Origin: Podarcis vaucheri
Taxonomy: Eukaryota
Length of the DNA stretch: 64,000 bases
Assembly: GCA_965113315.1 (NCBI GenBank)
Contig: OZ220379.1
Reading direction: 5' to 3' (one strand)
In this document: one piece after another, positions 3,601 through 6,600 of the stretch
Position numbering within the stretch: the first letter of the stretch is position 1
How the letters are laid out: each line of letters opens with the position of its first letter
Notes under the pieces: model-generated
Databases searched by the model: none
Seen by the model: the letters and a program-made list of their open reading frames with translations, nothing else
What the model was told of the DNA's origin: nothing
Translations under genes and position numbers: made by a program

Positions 3601-6600
3601 GAAAAAACAGGATTAGTGCAACTCTATGCTATCATAATGCCTTGCCTACTTTCCTTGCGGCTTGTAATGACACAGTAAGAGATCTTATGATCCAGCTCAA
3701 GTTCCCGAACTCACTATTCTGTGGAATCAACTGTTACAAATTCCTGTAAAGCATGCGCTGTCACAACTGGTGCATCATGCCCAATGCACTTATAAGCCAG
3801 TCCACTCCAGTCATATGATAAGGTTATTAGCTGGGCTAATCGCTGAAGCTGTGATTAATGGGAATTAAGTGTGGTGGTGAGGAGATCAATGGAGAAATTT
3901 CAGGCTTGCATCAGAATAATCTGAATGGGAATGCACACCCAACCTGCTGCTGAGGGCAGGATTGACTCTGCCATTAGACTAAGTGAGGCAGGCTGCTTCA
4001 GGCAGCATATTCTTGCAAATCATTAAAGGGAAGCAAACTGTAAGTTATTAAAGGTGAAAGGCCTTATTCATTTATTATTATTATTATTCATTAATTGCTT
4101 TCCCACAAGATCCAGTCAGAACGGCACGACTGTGCCCAACAACGACAGATATAGGGCAGAGACTGCATTGCACCCCTTTCAAAAAAGTATTATTTTAAGA
4201 CACTTTCATACTGGAAGTGACGTGTGACCCACATTTAAGTGATGAGATGTGATAATCACATGCACAGCTTTTTCATTTGGTGTGCATGCCACTGAAAGTT
4301 GTGGTTGGTTGTGGTTTCCCAACACAGGCACACAGCAAGAAGTCGTACAGGATAATATCAGAATAACTCTCATGGCTACTAGCCTGCCCCCACCCCCTAA
4401 AAGACTCCCAGAGATTGTAGTTTTGCTGGGGTACTGAGAATTCTGTTAGAGACCCCTAATTCCCCTGCCTCCAAATAGAACTAGAGCTTGAAGGGTTTCC
4501 TCTGGCGAGGGATTGGCTGTTTAGGTCTGTAGTGTAGATATGCCCTAAGTGGTATCTGCCTCCAATTACTGTATGTCTCTTTCTGAATATGCTGGCTCAC
4601 ACAGGCTATACCCAGATGTAGCTTTATTAGATAAAGGATGCTTAACTTTGCTAAGTTTGAATAAATGAAAATATTTTTAAAACTTGGAGGGGGAAAATGT
4701 AATTATTCTTGATTAGAAAGCTCAATTTTTACAGTGGCTTTTCAACCCAGGGCAACTTTTTTGGGAAAAGAGGAGCTAAAGGAAAAATAGAGAGTGTATG
4801 CTATGTAAAAATGCAATCCTTTCCAACTCAAAAGTACACCCCAGATAAGTGGCTATAGGATTGCTGCTTAATTATTTCTTCTTCTGTAGAAATATACTAA
4901 CTTCTCAGTTGATGGAAAAGATGTAAAACCTAGAATTATGTCAAGTATGGCTTCTGTGAAAGAGCACTTTGGGTGCAATCCTATGCTACTTGGAAGGGCA
5001 TCCCAGGGGGTCACAGAACAGATCAGATCTGCCCATCGGACAGAGAAAGAGCATTAGCATCAGAGAAGGTTGGGAGTCTCTCTCTCCCATTGGGACAGGT
5101 TGTCTGACCCTCCCAAAGGGAAAATGCCAGGAGGAGTCAGGCACCCTAAAGTCGCTGGGTCACTTGTCATGTTCCCAAGGCAGGTGAAAATTTAGAAACA
5201 CTTCTGAGTGTGTCTAAGTCTGCCCCTCAGTCTTTTCTTCCCTTGGAAACAATGGGAAGGAAAGTTGTTAAAAAGTATTTTTGAATTCCAGAAACCAGTG
5301 GAGGAACATTCTCCCCACCTAATTTTGCTCTGCCATTAGAGCCTTGCAAGGTGTTGAATGAGGTGATTAAACCACCTTGGTCCCCCCTCCAGCCCAAAAC
5401 CTTCGGATCACTGCCTTAAGCTACCTTCTGCTTGAATATCCACATTGTTTGGTTCCTCGTTTTGCATGATCATATGTTGAGACCTCAGCATGATAAAGTT
5501 GCTCAAAAGGTCAAAATCATCTCTACATTTCCTAGGCAGATCAAATCCATCAGGCATGTTATTTCCTAATGCATTCTTTGCGTCAGTAGATGCCTCCTTG
5601 TAACTGACAAGTTGGACTTGATCATTTTCTTCTTCTGGGTTTCCAAAATGCCCTGGTTTTCTTGTCTCAGTCTGTGGTTTCATTTTTCTGATTTTCTCAG
5701 TAGGTGCACTGTTGTCACCTTCAGAAGATGTTGTGTGCTGTAGATCGACCCCTGATACAGGCTCCAAGAGCATTGGAAGAAGTCTCTCTTTCTTTTGAGG
5801 AGACAAACAAGAACCTTTTGTTCCATTACAATCAGGGACACTAGAAGACTCCATTCTATTGTTAGCAAAGGAACTTGTCTCTTCAAGGCATTCTAAAAAG
5901 AAGAATATATATATATATATAAAGGTTTTCTCCGTGTTTCCCATATTTTGTATCTGTAACTCTATCCAGATGTTCATTCAACTGTGCTTCAACAACCAAT
6001 GTAGGCAAGCACCAGTCCTGTACCCAACATCCCCATGGATGCCAGCCCTGTTGCCTGCTACTATCAACTACAAAACGTAAGACTGTCTATTAAGCCAATT
6101 TTTTTTGTCATTTCATTCGGGGGGGGGGACAACACCTGACAAAATGCCCAATACTTACTGTCCATCTGAGAGGTAGACATTTTTGAGACCACTTCTACAT
6201 TGGTATGAAGAACCTCGTCTCCAGCGCTTAAATCTGTGTTCAATTCTTCTAAAACACATGGTCTGGCACAAGTTTCTGTTACATTAGTGCAGTCATCTTT
6301 TTCCAGGTGGCTGAACTGCAATATGTCTTCATGTGCAGACAGTGGACGCTCACTGCTTCCCCGGTGGGCGTCGGTTGTGGACCTTTGCTCTCTGCCTCCT
6401 TCCTGGCCAGCCAGACCCACATGGTCACCAGCCAAGGGGGAATTTCCCTCGGCCATCTCACCCATGGGGGTGTTACCTCCTTGCAAGTAGCCGGGTTGAA
6501 ATTCTGTAGCTGAAAGCTGTTGACATTTAGGTACGGAAGTCTGATGCTCTGTGAAAAAGGGGAAAACATGCATTTCGCATTAATTCCTACAAGAGGAGAA

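Follow-up and report, generated by a model that had tools for sequence, protein, structure and literature searches.

In-frame gain of noncoding DNA by an exon of the meiotic gene SHOC1 in Podarcis wall lizards

We analyzed a stretch of 64,000 nucleotides (nt) from the lizard Podarcis vaucheri (GenBank assembly GCA_965113315.1, contig OZ220379.1; referred to here as the window), which carries exons of SHOC1 on its minus strand. About 150 nt of noncoding DNA entered one of these exons (exon B), which had been uninterrupted before, with the reading frame kept, in the lacertid lineage after its split from amphisbaenians. The insert was later doubled with the tandem duplication of a two-exon module (A + B). 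SHOC1 is the vertebrate homologue of Zip2, an XPF-like ZMM protein of meiotic crossover formation. It is essential for class I crossovers (PMC13245411; PMC5962103; PMC6357729), and in mouse and human it depends on its N-terminal half to bind TEX11 (PMC13245411). The protein variant with the insert is already present in public annotation; a literature search on SHOC1 and lizard returned nothing relevant, and no paper on the origin of the insert was found.

The insert has a relative elsewhere in the window. In a blastn comparison within the 64-kb window, positions 6346 to 6502 in exon B aligned with positions 31361 to 31518 at 78.5% identity (158 columns; one 1-nt gap; E value, 3.6e-32), and the tandem twin aligned over 7929 to 8062 with 31361 to 31494 at 76% (E value, 8e-21). 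The local alignment score of the insert and the 31.4-kb copy was 88 (shuffled sequences, 9.1 ± 1.4; maximum, 13). The adjoining 250 to 300 nt on each side and the crossed flank pairs scored 11 to 13 (shuffled sequences, 9 to 10 ± 1.4), i.e., at chance level. Homology to the 31.4-kb segment is confined to the insert, and beyond it the 31.4-kb segment runs into unrelated sequence. A first-pass annotation, which was made from the letters of the window, had described this match (approximately 80% for both exon copies), the unrelated flanks, and two peptides that are collinear between the exon and the 31.4-kb copy. All three descriptions held, with the boundary 3 nt wider (6346 instead of 6349) and with collinearity over 44 codons, an upstream 1-nt indel shifting the frame of the first few codons. 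No further copies were detected by blastn in the window besides 6346 to 6502, 7929 to 8085, and 31361 to 31518, and a sensitive blastn comparison of 5000 to 11500 with 26000 to 37000 for other transferred pieces gave the known match only.

The positions of the three copies and of the exons around them are as follows.

5425 to 5892, minus strand: SHOC1 exon C, 468 nt, with AG/GT splice sites; RNA contigs end exactly at 5425 and 5892, and there is a weak match to PF17825.
6159 to 6548, minus strand: SHOC1 exon B1, 390 nt, with canonical AG/GT splice sites; an RNA contig reaches the end at 6548 and joins it to exon A1, and tblastn identity to Podarcis SHOC1 is 92 to 94%.
6346 to 6502, minus strand: insert copy in exon B1, approximately 157 nt homologous to 31.4 kb, with a net gain of 49 codons (running to RGSSER); seen by blastn, in the comparison with orthologs, and in RNA contigs.
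6861 to 6941, minus strand: pseudo-exon B', located in the intron between A1 and B1 and abutting a high-copy repeat; it copies some of the ancestral portion of exon B and shows nothing of the insert.
7454 to 7558, minus strand: SHOC1 exon A1, 105 nt, with AG/GT splice sites; the last 99 nt of an RNA contig (X16 record 18) lie on 7454 to 7552.
7742 to 8131, minus strand: SHOC1 exon B2, 390 nt, with canonical AG/GT splice sites; its 3' end is connected to exon A1 in an RNA contig (X17 record 29).
7929 to 8085, minus strand: insert copy in exon B2 (the upstream tandem module copy), present in annotated Podarcis proteins.
9505 to 9609, minus strand: SHOC1 exon A2, 105 nt, with AG/GT splice sites.
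31361 to 31518, minus strand: noncoding sibling and candidate donor, found by blastn, in the same orientation as the exon copies.

The 31.4-kb copy is not within the coding part of SHOC1: exon B1 is 25 kb downstream of it, and the first coding exon is approximately 13 kb downstream. This copy forms the left part of a GC-rich block of approximately 330 nt (31361 to 31690), and where the homology ends, at 31361, the composition changes from AT-rich to GC-rich. The Kimura two-parameter (K2P) distance between the insert and the 31.4-kb copy was 0.25. Of the 33 differences, 23 were transitions, 16 of which occurred in CpG context; CpG decay, also pointed out in the first-pass annotation, accounts for half of the differences. 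The differences were spread evenly over the codon positions (14/11/12), which indicates that the source was noncoding in the frame of the insert. The sequence from which both copies descend had 10 or more CpG in 157 nt (observed/expected ratio, approximately 0.7 or more), a density typical of young copies of short interspersed nuclear elements (SINEs) in the 64-kb window.

The insert sits in exon B of SHOC1, a minus-strand gene whose exons are collinear with named SHOC1 orthologs. Collinear SHOC1 exons were found by tblastn on the minus strand from approximately 18.5 kb down to 447, and residues 13 to 865 of Podarcis SHOC1 (annotated proteins of P. muralis, P. lilfordi, and P. raffonei) matched from 17249 to 447 with 90 to 100% identity. 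The downstream open reading frame (ORF), exon C, gave a weak match to Pfam PF17825 (DUF5587, SHOC1 family; E value, 9e-4; 17 bits versus a cut-off of 25). A phmmer search of 1.84 billion proteins with the exon ORF returned SHOC1 proteins, which were matched by ORF residues 78 to 140 only, and no relatives for residues ~27 to 77, which correspond to the insert. The exon flanks are SHOC1-like and the insert is not, as the first-pass annotation had proposed with reference to mammalian SHOC1. Exons A and B together make a module of 495 nt (165 codons), which equals the length gap between the 1,660- and 1,495-amino-acid Podarcis isoforms, and the tandem module copies are 94 to 97% identical (blastn). 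Joining exons A1 and B1 locally, together with a single A in place of the final base of exon B2, confirmed the reading frame. Pseudo-exon B' was considered as the holder of a decayed insert and rejected, since its tblastn extension contains stops and has chance-level identity only.

The lineage specificity of the insert was established from an alignment of 14 SHOC1 proteins (3 Podarcis and 11 other sauropsids, namely, Rhineura, Elgaria, Hemicordylus, Tiliqua, Anolis, Sceloporus, Pogona, Pantherophis, Paroedura, Trachemys, and Crocodylus). All 11 non-Podarcis proteins are uninterrupted at the site (...VTELK(T/K)(L/K/M)LS(V/I)HE...), and all three Podarcis proteins (P. muralis, P. raffonei, and P. 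lilfordi) have 49 extra residues there, in both module copies. The insertion point lies between ...TELK and TLLS..., and at the protein level at most 2 to 3 ancestral codons were replaced. The earlier proposal that part of the ancestral exon had been replaced holds for at most these few codons; relative to the 11 outgroups, 49 residues were gained. The first-pass annotation had also asked whether the segment is single copy apart from 31.4 kb and present in distant orthologs. It is of low copy number, but it is absent from the 11 other sauropsids. The insertion postdates the lacertid-amphisbaenian split and predates the Podarcis species compared.

An ORF of 91 amino acids (P0005), closest to the SHOC1 of a gecko (Paroedura), is continuous across the site (...ATELKKMLSIQED) and has intron-like residues at both ends, which indicates an unspliced genomic ORF. 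Because P0005 is continuous, the ancestral exon had no intron at this position, and intron retention is excluded as the origin of the extra residues. On both sides, the DNA homology to the 31.4-kb segment and the insertion end no more than a few bases apart, which makes it very unlikely that exon sequence was exported to 31.4 kb.

Contigs of four public runs were mapped on 5380 to 11360. In two small runs from a related species (organism G), contigs ended exactly at the exon C splice sites (5425 and 5892). X16 record 18 (483 nt, organism G) was unbroken over 6165 to 6548 and continued into exon A1 (7454 to 7552), and X15 record 10 is an RNA contig through 6165 to 6471. Both contigs cross the insert, which is thus kept in spliced RNA; neither contig uses the internal GTGAG as a donor, and the insert is likewise retained in the annotated Podarcis proteins. 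Removal of the stretch by splicing at GTGAG, a possibility raised in the first-pass annotation, is contradicted by both lines of evidence. In X17 record 29 (organism H), the 3' end of exon B2 (to ~7744) was joined to 7600 to 7454, which links both module copies in one transcript via an acceptor 42 nt upstream of the usual one. This alternative acceptor (ttctacag/A at 7600; 7559 to 7600, minus strand), used in this one low-depth RNA contig, would add 14 in-frame codons upstream of exon A1.

We also noted that a segment of approximately 70 residues (SYTSFHPGELEVPLTPP...LVWQSEKYQN...LLL), conserved in all 11 of the other sauropsids compared, is missing from Podarcis SHOC1; the corresponding introns in the window are 6549 to 7453 and 8132 to 9504. 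The exon of the WQSEKYQ segment had no tblastn match in any part of the window, and in RNA contigs exon A is spliced straight to exon B.

The first-pass annotation had interpreted the insert as a fragment of a transposable element (TE). Foreign DNA that is in frame, kept in mRNA, and doubled is supported by our results, but a TE origin is not: depth is low, signatures of transposition are missing from the junctions, and the Pfam, Rfam, and protein searches returned no relatives. In the genomic run X1, the summed contig depth was 122 on the bin holding most of the insert and 33 to 42 on single-copy bins, compared with 4e5 to 5e6 on interspersed repeats at 6780 to 7180, 8180 to 8580, 8780 to 9380, and 9980 to 10180. 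Contigs of X1 were matched at a threshold of 80% likeness, and the summed depth is an order-of-magnitude contrast rather than a copy number. X1 and the window show no differences over the two single-copy pieces listed (5380 to 6088 and 9642 to 10040). The depth of the insert fits the three copies in the window plus at most a few more.

Neither the insert junctions nor the 31.4-kb copy carried a target-site duplication (TSD), a terminal inverted repeat (TIR), a long terminal repeat (LTR), a poly(A) tract, or a microsatellite tail. A repeat scan of 30900 to 32100 (inverted repeats, direct repeats, and TSDs) gave short chance-level matches only, and an Rfam E-value scan of the same region gave chance matches only. 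There was no Pfam match for the exon B ORFs or for any ORF around 31.4 kb, and a word search limited to proteins of 57 to 180 amino acids detected no relatives of the plus-strand ORF at 31379 to 31690. A sibling 25 kb away on the same strand would be expected with a chance of approximately 1e-3 for fewer than approximately 30 dispersed copies in a genome of approximately 1.5 Gb, by our arithmetic. A TE-derived label for the insert is not supported, and a label of "TE-derived exon," as assigned in the style of a repeat masker, would probably be wrong here.

With moderate confidence, we regard the insert as a local duplicative "patch" that came from, or is shared with, the upstream segment, which was CpG-rich at the time. 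A segment of the CpG-rich block now at 31361 to 31690, or of a common ancestor sequence, would have been copied into a break or a stalled fork in exon B. Likely routes would be a templated patch made during double-strand-break repair or template switching to a donor in cis during replication; an abundant TE would not have been the carrier of the inserted DNA. The locus has undergone other rearrangements, i.e., the tandem duplication of the module, the stray partial exon B', and the loss of the conserved WQSEKYQ exons, and these indicate that it is structurally unstable. At the junctions, there may be an overlap between ATTTCAA in the exon, ATTTGAA at 31.4 kb, and the codons of the ancestral E-L-K residues, with the ancestral state known as protein only. 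Several points weigh against a patch. At an 80% matching threshold, an old family with members ~78% alike would go largely undetected, and the core of the insert (6380 to 6440) has a depth of roughly 5 to 9 single-copy equivalents, so that a few copies may exist in addition to the three in the window. Moreover, the ancestral CpG density fits a mobile sequence that was young at the time, and an end of homology at the AT/GC shift at 31361 is as expected at the end of an element.

The latter points bear on an old and now low-copy mobile family, from which both the exon insert and the 31.4-kb copy would have been derived, with the frame of the exon copy kept by chance: a 5'-truncated retroelement, a small, locally hopping nonautonomous element, or a part of a DIRS/Ngaro or endogenous retrovirus (ERV)-type element. 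This is the main alternative, which we consider unlikely. It would account for a discrete unit with sharp ends in both places, an ancestral sequence as CpG-rich as the young repeats of this genome, a compositional boundary at one end of the homology (31361), and a depth in the insert core that is a few-fold above single copy, so that extra copies may exist. In general, most exonic insertions that have paralogs elsewhere derive from TEs. Against such a family, the depth of the insert is 3 to 4 orders of magnitude below that of every real interspersed repeat in the same 6 kb, and no other copy is present in 64 kb that otherwise hold many SINE copies and copies of long interspersed nuclear elements (LINEs). 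TSDs, TIRs, LTRs, and poly(A) are lacking, as is any Pfam, Rfam, or protein similarity on either strand, and the probability that a dispersed low-copy family has two equally oriented copies no more than 25 kb apart is ~1e-3. Transfer in the reverse direction, in which the insert arose in the exon from another source and was alone copied later to 31.4 kb, is very improbable. The same orientation, the proximity of the copies, and the tendency of this locus to duplicate pieces of exon B (e.g., B' at 6861 to 6941) agree with it, but both ends of the transferred piece would have to fall within approximately 5 nt of the insert ends (~7e-4 for random ends in a 390-nt exon, by our estimate), and the 31.4-kb copy is continuous with a GC-rich block, to ~31690, that is missing from the exon. 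That no insertion occurred at all, the stretch being an ancestral intron that was retained or exonized or else an assembly artifact, has next to no credibility. The stretch does hold GTGAG, a potential donor site; however, the 11 outgroup proteins and the apparently unspliced P0005 run continuously across the site, the insert is present in three independent Podarcis annotations and in RNA contigs from two other runs, and X1 does not differ from the window on the two single-copy pieces.

The insert copies in B1 and B2 differ at 10 of 159 nt, with a ratio of nonsynonymous to synonymous substitution (dN/dS) of 0.92; the dN/dS of the ancestral parts of the exon is 0.68. Inside the insert, all four differences between organism G and the window change the residue, as determined by placing the 13 base differences of organism G into the window sequence and translating the changed exon. 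These values suggest that the insert evolves about neutrally, without a sign of constraint, inside a fast-evolving N-terminal half of SHOC1. The polar, glycine-rich peptide of the insert has a high content of Gly, Glu, Ser, Thr, and Pro and, judged from this composition alone, is probably disordered. The insert lies in the TEX11-binding half, and a functional effect is possible.

In a comparison of 6159 to 6548 with 7742 to 8131 and with proteins P0133, P0129, and P0009, the module copies shared species-specific residues within each Podarcis species (muralis, PGDLQ; raffonei, ESQPSYLQ and LSPHED; lilfordi, PDYLQ). Such sharing points to gene conversion between the two modules or to duplication on more than one occasion.

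We tentatively combine these observations into one history. A CpG-rich upstream segment may have been copied by repair or a template switch into the exon, adding 49 new residues in the TEX11-binding half, and may then have been kept, duplicated, and homogenized in a lineage that also lost the WQSEKYQ segment. If this is true, the N-terminal region of SHOC1 was remodeled wholesale in wall lizards, possibly in connection with changes in crossover control. This half of the protein tolerates, or is driven to, large changes in Podarcis (the insert, the module duplication, and the motif loss). The locus offers a clean and datable case of coding sequence born from noncoding DNA inserted into an existing exon, with no TE required. 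Podarcis is a genus used to study hybridization and speciation.

Several other features were recorded in the window. A tandem array at 19436 to 20300 (period, approximately 148 nt; approximately 6 copies; 97 to 99% identity) lies just upstream of the CpG-rich 5' region of SHOC1 (18.7 to 19.4 kb). A CpG-rich, SINE-like family is represented by seven copies with 75 to 90% identity (2385 to 2709, 13412 to 13710, 13825 to 14172, 30221 to 30447, 49702 to 50054, 60545 to 60908, and 62578 to 62849), and other very high-copy repeats (depth, 1e5 to 1e6) occur at 6931 to 7213, 8180 to 8580, 8884 to 9128, and ~10020 to 10076. On the minus strand, two adjacent ORFs (213 and 334 amino acids; 51221 to 52766) resemble LINE reverse transcriptase, with a YADD motif in the translation, and an ORF at 24955 to 25338 matches the Pfam Brinker DNA-binding domain (E value, 3e-7) and may be a remnant of a pogo/Tigger-type transposase. 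A pair of direct repeats with 72% identity (33134 to 33570 and 39383 to 39819) overlaps an acidic ORF of 200 amino acids (33180 to 33782, minus strand) that had no Pfam match.

Among known systems, the SHOC1 event resembles the class 2 templated sequence insertions (TSIs; also templated sequence insertion polymorphisms [TSIPs]) described by Onozawa and Aplan in 2016 (PMC5110952), in which a genomic piece of approximately 100 to 200 nt copied from elsewhere fills a break, with a small loss at the target and without a target-site duplication, poly(A), or a poly(A) signal. The human cases were templated from distant regions, often through RNA, whereas the SHOC1 sibling lies 25 kb away in cis on the same strand, and the SHOC1 event took place in a coding exon, in frame, and is fixed in a genus. 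A cis donor within tens of kilobases, direct orientation, and further rearrangements at the locus are features shared with fork stalling and template switching/microhomology-mediated break-induced replication (FoSTeS/MMBIR). Template switching of this kind produces short insertional duplications from nearby templates and has junction microhomology as its hallmark. The SHOC1 event differs in being old (K2P, 0.25). As in the exaptation of TEs into coding exons, foreign noncoding DNA is read in frame and kept in the SHOC1 protein, but the search for the defining feature of such cases, membership in an interspersed TE family, was negative for the insert. Finally, the exons of the gene are collinear with those of named SHOC1 orthologs (PF17825), and Podarcis SHOC1 differs from them in its 49-residue insert, its duplicated 165-residue module, and its lack of the WQSEKYQ segment, which is conserved from crocodile and turtle to other squamates.

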